Positions 26,860-29,285 of a stretch of 64,000 nucleotides of DNA are shown in pieces; position 1 is the stretch's first letter; each line of letters begins with the position of its first letter. The DNA lies in sequence record OR538032.1; one strand, given 5' to 3'. The translations under genes were made by a program, and so were the position numbers. Below the pieces are notes generated by a model. That model did not search any database. It saw nothing but the letters and a program-made list of their open reading frames with translations, and was not told where the DNA came from.

Positions 26860-26938
26860 AATGTTTTCCTCGTGTAGTTGATAATGTGTATACTACACGT
26901 TGATGAAACGCATGTCAACAACTTTTTCAAATTATTTT

Positions 26939-27395: not shown

Positions 27396-27517
27396 TGGTG
27401 GAGAGTACGGGATTCGAACCACGTGACCAAAAGATTTACCTAGTTAGGGTTTGCAGCATGAATGCTTATCAGAATTCTTTAACATTCTTTTGCTCTACCA
27501 GACTGAGCTAACTCTCC
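27396..27517 (-). ncRNA. tRNA-scaffolded RNA A (motif module in place of anticodon loop)
   Basis: GGAGAGT/ACTCTCC-ACCA, D arm, T arm, about 50-nt insert. Confidence 0.75.
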
Positions 27518-27523
27518 AGAATT

Positions 27524-27641
27524 TGAGGGTGAAGTACAGGACTCGAACCTGCGACCTCCGGCGTGCATAAAATGCAGCATGAAATCTTAACAGACTTCTA
27601 TTGTTTAGACCGGCATTCTAACCAACTGAACTAACTTCACC
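27524..27641 (-). ncRNA. tRNA-Asp-like scaffolded RNA B
   Basis: GTTCAGTTGGTTAGAATGCCGG...CACGCCGGAGGTCGCAGGTTCGAGTCC with insert in the anticodon loop. Confidence 0.75.
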
Positions 27642-27782: not shown

Positions 27783-28032
27783 GTTCTTGGGCGTGCTTAC
27801 GCAGATCGATTCTTCACTACGTAAGCACAAAATCCTCTAGTTTATATTTGCCTTAGCTAATCACAACACAATCTGGAATCGTGCGCTTTAATTACGGGAT
27901 GAATGACCCGTTCGCATGTGATTAGCGTAGAACAGCTACGCACCGTTTCTTCTTCAATGTCCAAGGCAAAGAGGACTATGAATACTAGTGCGAGAAGATA
28001 TACAATCAAATTGCTCACCTCGCTTAATAAGT

Positions 28033-28179
28033 GAGAGTACATTGGTCGAGTGTAACGGAATCGAACCGTTCCCACGATCTCCCTATGATATGCGTAAATT
28101 GGTTGCTGAATATAATCATGTCTGATTACAGTATGCTACGTGTGCTGCCACTACACCAACACTCGACCAATGTACTCTC
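28033..28179 (-). ncRNA. tRNA-scaffolded RNA D with 21-bp terminal stem, paralog of C
   Basis: GAGAGTACATTGGTCGAGTGT perfect inverted repeat, D and T arms, motif insert. Confidence 0.75.
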
Positions 28180-28334: not shown

Positions 28335-28438
28335 CTCATCTTCAGCGAAGAGACAGAAACGATGAGTCTAGTCTGTTTAATCAATGTTGTTCATCTTCAA
28401 GAAGAGGCGAGAACGATGAACTTAGCTCGCTTAATCAA
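28335..28438 (-). repeat. two 55-nt-period repeats, each a predicted H-type pseudoknot
   Basis: compensatory changes ACAGA/TCTGT vs GCGAG/CTCGC and CTCATC/GATGAG vs TTCATC/GATGAA. Confidence 0.75.
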
Positions 28439-28446
28439 CTGTGTTA

Positions 28447-28567
28447 ATCTTATCAGCTTCTCAGCGAAAGTCAACATCTTTTTCAAATATTTCATCGAGT
28501 TGAAAGTTTGTTTTCTGTCTCTCGACTCGATGAAATACATTCTACATCCTTTTCAGATGAAGTCAAC
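28447..28567 (-). promoter_or_regulatory. tandem promoters heading the RNA operon
   Basis: GTTGAC-N17-TAGAAT (28539-28567) and GTTGAC-N17-TAAGAT (28447-28475). Confidence 0.75.
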
Positions 28568-28582
28568 AACTATTTTAACTTT

Positions 28583-28837
28583 TTAAACGGAAATGATAAT
28601 GCCGCTTTCAGTCTCACCTCGTTCAAGCGCAGCGTGCTTGATCTGAAGTTGTGATACTGCTTGCTGAAGTTCAATAATAGCTTTGTCATAAAGCTTGTTG
28701 TTCTCTTTAAGCAAAGCAATTTGATCGGTCTGCATACCAATGATGTACGTTAGTAGAACAACGTTCTCATCAGTCGTCAGCGTTTCAGGCGCTTCATTGT
28801 ACTTCTTCAGCACCGCTTCGGTAGATAGATCAGTCAT
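28583..28837 (-). CDS. coiled-coil hypothetical protein
   Basis: TAATG coupling to 57B. Confidence 0.65.
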   Translation of the reverse strand: MTDLSTEAVLKKYNEAPETLTTDENVVLLTYIIGMQTDQIALLKENNKLYDKAIIELQQAVSQLQIKHAALERGETESGIIISV

Positions 28838-29285
28838 TATTAGCAACCCATTCTAGATCTAGTGGTTCGATATATTCATCGACAAGACGAACCTCTGTAT
28901 TGATGAACATAGGGGTGATTACGTCGTCATAAGACAATGTGACGTGCGGAGTATAGTCAGGGTAATCGTGAGTACCACCGATAGAGATAAGGTCTTCGTG
29001 ACGTTCTACAAGAGCAGGACATGACATCTTAGCAACGACCGCGTGTTTACCGTCTTGCGTTTTCCAACAGTCAACTTGTTCAACAGTGGCAACGAAAGTG
29101 GTATCTACAACAGGCACATCAATTTGCTTACGACTATAAAGCACAGTCACGTGAAATTTATCTGGATCTAACGGATTTTTTAGACGAAGCGTTTTTTGCA
29201 AGCGAACTAGCTCTTGCTTACTTGCTTCGTCTAATTTGATACCAACGTAAGTTCCCTGACTCTCAAGGAACTTAGATAGTTTCAT
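28830..29285 (-). CDS. 57B: gp57B / Acb1 2H-phosphoesterase (anti-CBASS nuclease)
   Basis: HVTVLYSR and YTPHVTLSY HxT motifs, WKTQDG, EYIEPLDLEW; synteny with 57A and 1. Confidence 0.9.
   Translation of the reverse strand: MKLSKFLESQGTYVGIKLDEASKQELVRLQKTLRLKNPLDPDKFHVTVLYSRKQIDVPVVDTTFVATVEQVDCWKTQDGKHAVVAKMSCPALVERHEDLISIGGTHDYPDYTPHVTLSYDDVITPMFINTEVRLVDEYIEPLDLEWVANND

Follow-up and report, generated by a model that had tools for sequence, protein, structure and literature searches.

Two adjacent 54-nt units were identified on the minus strand of a KVP40-like Vibrio phage, where its tRNA-gene region begins. Each is almost certainly an RNA element of the transcribed strand that folds as an H-type pseudoknot with a sequence-invariant core. 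An earlier note on this DNA had proposed two tandem pseudoknots with compensatory changes right after the proximal promoter, and this is borne out by a comparison of 18 distinct units drawn from three lineages, namely the KVP40-like phages, Vibrio phage D479 and a marine metagenome element. The units are members of a small RNA family that had not been described before; its structure is of a familiar kind and its known distribution is narrow. Its members are found singly or in pairs immediately after strong early promoters, with tRNA or tRNA-like genes immediately downstream.

Phage tRNA clusters are now viewed as counter-measures to host defences. To our knowledge, the transcription, protection and processing of long untranslated tRNA units are barely known outside T4. 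The compact motif described here, which is proven by covariation and has an invariant core, heads stable-RNA units in two unrelated marine virus groups, and the partner of the 54-nt RNA can be sought directly.

The window (the whole 64-kb stretch of DNA that was analysed) is, by its sequence, that of a KVP40-like Vibrio phage (Schizotequatrovirus, T4-like). The 801 bases around the feature show 97-99% identity to the Vibrio phages V09, KVP40 and phi-pp2 and 80-93% identity to about 35 further Vibrio phages. Gene 1, gene 57A, gene 57B and a small ORF lie upstream of the pseudoknot leader on the minus strand. Downstream of it lies the tRNA region, which contains 27 ordinary tRNA genes (27015 to 19336) and several odd ones. 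In a comparison among relatives, the leader was conserved at least as well as the adjoining genes. Gene 57B (28830-29285, minus strand), located two genes upstream of the leader, is a counter-defence gene of the Acb1 type (Pfam Acb1, anti-CBASS protein, E 1.7e-46), which is labelled 'RNA ligase' or hypothetical in sequence records.

Structure and covariation of the pseudoknot units

Each unit consists of an 8-nt flank, the 5' strand of helix S1 (5 nt), loop L1 (4 nt), the 5' strand of helix S2 (7 nt), loop L2 (3 nt), the 3' strand of S1, loop L3 (11-12 nt) and the 3' strand of S2. The strand order S1 5', S2 5', S1 3', S2 3' is that of an H-type pseudoknot, with 5 bp in S1 and 7 bp in S2. Unit A begins 2-3 nt downstream of the predicted start of promoter P2. 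The measured period of the units is 54 nt and not 55 nt as had been stated. The S2 helix of the earlier note is present, and at 7 bp it is one pair longer than was proposed; the extra pair covaries as well, being G-C in unit A and A-U in unit B. The two units are 71% alike, and both sides have changed in four of the five S1 pairs and in two of the seven S2 pairs, in agreement with the claim that both helices covary between the copies. The coordinates of the units and of the neighbouring features are given in Table 1.

Table 1. Coordinates of the pseudoknot units, promoters and adjoining structured RNAs in the window
Feature	Position	Strand	Description
Promoter P1	28566-28539	(-)	TTGACT, 16 nt, TAGAAT; A-rich stretch upstream; 10/12 matches
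Hairpin	28537-28488	(-)	19 pairs; at or just after the P1 transcription start
Promoter P2	28474-28447	(-)	TTGACT, 16 nt, TAAGAT; TG before -10
Unit A	28438-28389	(-)	covariance-model score 69 bits
Unit A flank	28438-28431	(-)	TTGATTAA
Unit A S1	28430-28426 with 28411-28407	(-)	GCGAG with CTCGC
Unit A S2	28421-28415 with 28395-28389	(-)	GTTCATC with GATGAAC
Unit A loops	28425-28422 (L1); 28414-28412 (L2); 28406-28396 (L3)	(-)	
Unit B	28384-28334	(-)	covariance-model score 81 bits
Unit B flank	28384-28377	(-)	
Unit B S1	28376-28372 with 28357-28353	(-)	ACAGA with TCTGT
Unit B S2	28367-28361 with 28340-28334	(-)	ACTCATC with GATGAGT
Unit B loops	28371-28368 (L1); 28360-28358 (L2); 28352-28341 (L3)	(-)	
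E2	28332-28181	(-)	152-nt structured RNA, 19-24-pair closing stem
E3	28179-28033	(-)	tRNA-like gene in a perfect 21-pair leader/trailer stem, z = -7.2

The pattern of letters shared by the two units has two matches in the window and none in 100 shuffles. A pairing descriptor was run over 1.2 Mb of DNA, in which over 100 sequences match part of the pattern by chance, and it picked out only these units and their homologues. The single-helix stabilities are -4.9 (A) and -2.3 (B) kcal/mol for S1 and -7.7 (A) and -8.0 (B) kcal/mol for S2. Nested folding, which cannot score knots, does not mark out the region (z = 0.09). Because nested folding is blind to knots, the structural case rests on the comparison with relatives.

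The region was compared in KVP40, VS1, ValKK3, nt-1, CZ01, K566, D482, F86 and 1.081.O. The first alignment contained 16 distinct units, and standard pairs were found in 189 of 189 helix cells, with double changes in 7 of the 12 pairs; when the strands were slid by 1-3 columns, pairing was 25-55%. In the full set of 18 distinct units, all 213 helix cells pair (213/213), as against 25-57% in the slid controls. Compensatory double changes are present in 8 of the 12 pairs of this set, and as many as four pair types are seen at a single position. The two units of D479 were found with the covariance model and played no part in the definition of the structure, and they still pair fully. G-U pairs in S1 arise only if the minus strand is taken as the RNA.

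The sequence-invariant core comprises 21 of the 55 alignment columns. These include the last three pairs of S2, the 3-nt junction, four bases of L3 and the three bases before the 3' strand of S2, and parts of the 5' flank are also invariant. A covariance model built from the 16-unit alignment scored the true units at 65-81 bits in the KVP40-like set and at 37-81 bits when the D479 units were included. The next-best scores were 13 bits in the 64-kb window and 15 bits in related loci, and the background did not exceed 16 bits. No third copy was found in the 64-kb window by search with this model.

The probability that the region holds no RNA element, and is instead an opposite-strand coding ORF or a DNA-level repeat, is negligible. 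The ORF concerned, KVP40.0320 (74 aa, 28362-28586, plus strand), is annotated in KVP40 and is without a Pfam match. It is not maintained in the relatives: ValKK3 and CZ01 have no such stop-free stretch, VS1 and nt-1 have a shortened one, and the indels between relatives are not multiples of three. The broken reading frame, together with compensatory changes and strand-specific G-U pairs that indicate an RNA, refutes the coding reading.

Occurrence of the motif and comparison with known RNA families

Vibrio phage D479, the 57B protein of which is 54% identical, contains two units scoring 48 and 37 bits. Each of these is located behind its own promoter-like site, the second of which was called by the promoter scan 9 nt upstream of its unit, and no more than about 20 nt beyond the units lies a tRNA-like gene that has a long stem and an insertion. 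Phage 1.081.O contains a single unit (L004 1199-1252) in which S1 resembles that of unit B and S2 that of unit A. This hybrid may be the product of a deletion by recombination between two units, or it may represent an ancestral single copy. With the covariance model, no unit was detected downstream of 57B in Aeromonas phage phiAS4, Acinetobacter phage phi1_092060 or Escherichia phage AnYang; the motif is missing at this locus from these three other T4-like genera. The model also found no unit in positions 1-50000 of KVP40, where the best score was 14.5 bits. Pattern scans of viral contigs returned the motif only from KVP40 and VH7D. Matches of a looser pattern in coding DNA were rejected as chance by the pairing descriptor and the covariance model.

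A pattern scan of metagenomes detected the motif in two Tara Oceans contigs (L135 and L136), and a scan of 185,579 species genomes detected the same marine element in one contig (L137) binned as a Chloroflexota MAG. The marine element has a single unit, 12 nt upstream of a tRNA-Asn(GUU) gene. It keeps the same core, and no other DNA or protein similarity to the window was found, which suggests that the motif is modular and host-directed. Nearly all proteins of the element are orphans, the exceptions being a NinI-like phosphatase and a methyltransferase-like protein. Despite its binning with a Chloroflexota MAG, the 75-kb marine contig has the appearance of a virus or mobile element. It also contains a 120-nt direct repeat with a perfect TATAAT (L135 8826-9310, minus strand; the same in L136 and L137). 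An A-tract and TTGTAT lie upstream of the TATAAT, and the promoter scan makes no call there. After the repeat come a structured leader (~150 nt, z = -3.0), the motif and the tRNA-Asn gene, in this order. By eye, this leader appears to form a second, unrelated compact pseudoknot.

No Rfam 15 family was found for the knots in gathering or E-value mode; beyond tmRNA, the searches returned only snoRNA- and miRNA-like noise. A description of the motif was not found in literature searches. That the units are a piece or derivative of tmRNA, in which PK2-PK4 are tandem pseudoknots, is extremely unlikely. The two have in common tandem knots of about 50 nt within a stable RNA associated with tRNA, and positions 191-290 of the Rfam tmRNA model (RF00023) align locally to 28434-28333 on the minus strand. 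This alignment scores 11.7 bits in the 161-nt search and 15.3 bits (E 6e-4) in the 0.9-kb search, the latter far under the gathering score of 47. The 90%-identical units of K566 and the marine unit gave no match in equally small searches, and no match covered the knots of six relatives in a 15-kb search. ARAGORN finds no tmRNA, and there is no blastn match in E. coli genomes. The knots also differ from tmRNA in lacking a tag reading frame, a 5' acceptor strand upstream and the tRNA-like domain arrangement formed from the 5' and 3' ends. The tmRNA reading is largely refuted by the failure of the match in relatives, ARAGORN and blastn against E. coli genomes.

A small-molecule riboswitch, with the units as tandem aptamers built on an H-type knot like that of preQ1 or SAM-II, is very improbable indeed. 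None of the Rfam riboswitch models, a search suggested in the earlier note, matched at E<=10, and this includes the preQ1-I/II/III, SAM-II/V, fluoride and guanidine-III families. The fold is compact, the core is invariant and tandem aptamers exist; the marine motif, moreover, precedes tRNA-Asn(GUU), a queuosine-family tRNA. However, no terminator or ribosome-binding site follows any unit, which leaves no expression platform. The first unit of D479 is followed by another promoter, and the other units are followed by a unit, a long stem or a tRNA.

The earlier note had also raised a type III antitoxin mimic, that is, a pseudo-ToxI-like RNA neutralising a host endoribonuclease of the ToxN/AbiQ type. 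The units share with the type III antitoxins (ToxI, AntiQ, CptI and TenpI) the arrangement of tandem pseudoknot-forming repeats with conserved single-stranded tails, and ToxI-like repeats are known in phages (PMC5086642). A type III locus consists of one promoter, a tandem repeat array, a Rho-independent terminator and a toxin gene; the repeats of the ToxIN family are 34-36 nt long and occur in several copies upstream of the terminator and toxin gene (PMC5086642). Here, in contrast, the units are 54 nt long and diverged, the copies being only 71% alike, and one relative has a single unit. Unit B is followed by structured RNAs and tRNA-like genes, with no terminator and no toxin gene, and the ORFs downstream of the leader have no Pfam or PADLOC match. 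Searches of 161 nt and 901 nt with Rfam, which was to be checked for ToxI, CptI and TenpI, matched no antitoxin family at E<=10, and the same was true of the relatives. Type III loci are sporadic in occurrence, whereas the core seen here recurs in phages of many Vibrio species and in the marine element, which is unrelated. When the 185,579 bacterial species genomes were scanned with a strict motif, no bacterial counterpart for a phage RNA to mimic was found. On the evidence of sequence, the antitoxin reading is not supported by the layout of the locus, the family searches or the search for a host counterpart, and is very unlikely.

The gene 32 leader of T4 and T2 provides another H-type pseudoknot at the 5' end of an early T4-family transcript. 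The transcript that contains the gene 32 knot is very stable, and the knot is bound specifically by protein (PMC3014915). Like the phage units, the gene 32 knot adjoins UUAA-containing A/U-rich single strands. It differs from them in that it precedes a protein-coding gene, nucleates autoregulatory binding and has other loop sizes, and no sequence similarity was found between the two. Identity with the gene 32 operator was rejected, as the gene 32 leader of KVP40 is 56 nt long and has no match to the model.

Promoters and possible functions of the leader

Two promoters located ahead of the units, P1 and P2, are predicted from their sequence to be strong early promoters of the sigma-70 type. The hexamers of P1 are unchanged in 10 relatives while its spacer is variable, and P2 is kept in all relatives. 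The P1 region duplicates the P2 region at a spacing of 92 nt. Judged from spacing, transcription from P2 should start near 28440. The upstream hairpin begins 2 nt past the -10 hexamer of P1, and the P1 transcript should therefore start within its 5' arm.

The existence of this hairpin had been recognised in the earlier note; it has 19 pairs in place of the 12 bp given there. In an alignment of 8 relatives, 94.6% of its cells pair, compared with 31-48% in slid controls, and changes from G-C to G-U fit an RNA only if it is read from the minus strand. The loop had been described as complementary to one unit, and in the window it is complementary to unit B over 11 nt. The complementarity extends over 11-12 nt in KVP40, VS1, nt-1 and CZ01 but over only 4-6 nt in ValKK3, K566, D482, F86 and 1.081.O, so that pairing between the loop and unit B is not a conserved interaction. 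In phage D479, a pseudoknot unit is found at the position of the hairpin. The outer stem of the hairpin repeats letters of S2, from which it may be a relative of the pseudoknot unit.

The '9-kb operon' that had been assumed to follow the leader consists of several transcription units, as indicated by internal promoter-like sites and a good terminator. The internal promoter-like sites lie at 26918, 24564 and 24482, the last two in tandem; terminators that score as good are found at 25204-25184 and 19064-19042. The knots head the first unit (~28440 to ~25184), which contains E2 and all five of the tRNA-like genes that bear insertions. Every early promoter of the tRNA cluster has a stable structure directly after its start. 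At the second tandem pair this is a small hairpin within a few bases of each promoter, with no pseudoknot. The second tandem promoters (24564-24454, minus strand) are near-identical (TTTACA, 17 nt, TACAAT), lie 82 nt apart and are just ahead of a tRNA-Leu gene.

In the three lineages, the motif is located upstream of every stable-RNA gene in its unit, at a distance of 1-22 nt from E2, from tRNA-Asn or from a tRNA-like gene with a long stem. The sequence-specific core of the knot, its first-in-unit leader position and the adjoining predicted processing site suggest that the module functions as a cis-acting leader of an early stable-RNA transcription unit, a reading that is offered tentatively and is based on anatomy. 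The knot would be the first RNA to emerge from the polymerase and would fold compactly. It could then act on the elongation complex or on the nascent precursor, so that transcription is sustained and the precursor kept intact across a long, untranslated and highly structured stretch. Its role may be in processivity or anti-termination, in blocking the entry of 5'-end-dependent RNases, or in both, and the downstream RNAs would then be excised at the long leader/trailer stems and at the tRNA ends. The invariant core implies a specific partner, which may be the host transcription machinery. An antitermination or nuclease-blocking leader had been listed in the earlier note as an alternative to the antitoxin; it fits the anatomy better and comes near to the best explanation.

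The rrn leaders and the HK022 put RNAs are promoter-proximal and act in cis in processive antitermination. They resemble the phage leader in having tandem strong promoters and a structured leader that is transcribed first, and rrn units also contain long untranslated stable RNAs inside long leader/trailer duplexes. The likeness is one of layout only, that of a promoter-proximal leader of a long, poorly translated unit. The put RNA consists of two stem-loops and boxA is a linear site, whereas the phage motif is a knot, and the second tRNA unit is without the motif.

Several observations weaken the cis-acting reading. The second tRNA unit (24564, 24482) has no pseudoknot, which indicates that the motif is no general requirement for transcription of the tRNA cluster. 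In the P2 transcript about 10 unpaired nt precede S1, an arrangement that would serve a simple 5'-end cap poorly. The marine motif is located about 150 nt from the nearest promoter-like sequence, which is itself uncalled by the scan. No strong intrinsic terminator that would need to be read through was found between the motif and 25204. The invariant core, moreover, would fit a trans-acting protein-binding RNA equally well.

The main rival to a cis-acting leader is such a trans-acting RNA, which accounts for the core and the copy number equally well. The leader would be cut off by RNase P, III or E to give a stable small RNA, about 110 nt long with two knots in the KVP40-like phages. Its core and tails would titrate a conserved host or phage protein, the RNA serving as a decoy, a sponge, a regulator or possibly a counter-defence factor. 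In keeping with this, the nucleotides of the loops and the junction do not vary, in contrast to the stems, which covary, and the motif always adjoins a predicted processing site. The copy number of 1-2 and the extra promoters in D479 would be expected of a dosage-dependent product, and the nearby 57B (Acb1 anti-CBASS) gene points to a counter-defence neighbourhood. On the other hand, a product acting in trans does not need the fixed first-in-unit position seen in three lineages, and the strict pattern has no bacterial counterpart in the 185,579 species genomes. On balance, a processed trans-acting RNA appears somewhat unlikely.

The T4 tRNA cluster yields stable RNAs of unknown role, which also counts in favour of a trans-acting product. 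Among these, RNAs C and D (also called species 1 and 2) are small and structured but are not tRNAs; they are co-transcribed with tRNAs and released by tRNA-processing enzymes. RNAs C and D lie inside the T4 cluster and the phage knots at the head of theirs, a comparison made by description only.

A more general proposal, which is doubtful, is that the knots represent phage RNA effectors of a new class, the protein partner of which is conserved, working in one of two modes. In the first mode, a factor-independent RNA would travel on host RNA polymerase and render it resistant to termination across stable-RNA genes. In the second, an RNA freed from a tRNA-type precursor would serve as a decoy and disarm a host defence that targets RNA; such a decoy might work together with the neighbouring tRNA-like RNAs and the adjacent anti-CBASS gene.

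Structured RNAs downstream of the leader

The motif flags a block of undescribed structured RNAs, among them E2 and five tRNA-like genes that bear insertions and long processing stems, which current annotation hides under spurious ORFs or 'pseudo-tRNA' labels. E2 begins 1-2 nt after unit B. It folds with -53.4 kcal/mol (z = -6.4) and has three inner hairpins, and its long stem and an inner hairpin covary among relatives. No Rfam match was found for E2, and it is missing in D479 and in the marine element. E3 contains a tRNA-like gene (~28165-28043) with a large insertion in the anticodon arm. This gene is annotated as tRNA-OTHER (pseudo) in phi-pp2 and phi-ST2 and is called by ARAGORN with the intron option, and its acceptor and T stems covary. 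Long duplexes are RNase III substrates in rrn precursors. The duplexes that enclose E2 and E3 covary among relatives, and from their anatomy we infer RNase III-type cleavage at these sites.

The five tRNA-like genes are located on the minus strand at 28165-28043, ~27775-27655, 27640-27528, 27517-27399 and 25845-25733. They are 113-123 nt long, each with a 40-50-nt insertion in the anticodon arm, and a short sequence motif is common to at least two of the insertions. Three of the five are scored at 50-52 bits by the Rfam tRNA model, with 44-46 inserted bases. The insertion-bearing genes are missed by ARAGORN in its default mode and are given inconsistent anticodons when introns are allowed. They are annotated as pseudo or 'OTHER', yet they are conserved with covariation and are also present in D479.

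Two annotated ORFs overlap these RNAs. KVP40.0320 (plus strand) overlaps the hairpin and the pseudoknots, and KVP40.0319 (27857-28075, minus strand), which encodes a hypothetical protein, overlaps E3. Both are probably annotation artefacts over RNA genes. Sub-threshold matches to the Rfam YrlA family (28-32 bits) were obtained at 27468-27587 and at the same place in four relatives (L005, L007, L008 and L009). These matches lie at the junction of adjacent tRNA-like genes, where a T-arm is followed by the next D-arm, and probably reflect this arrangement and no true Y RNA.
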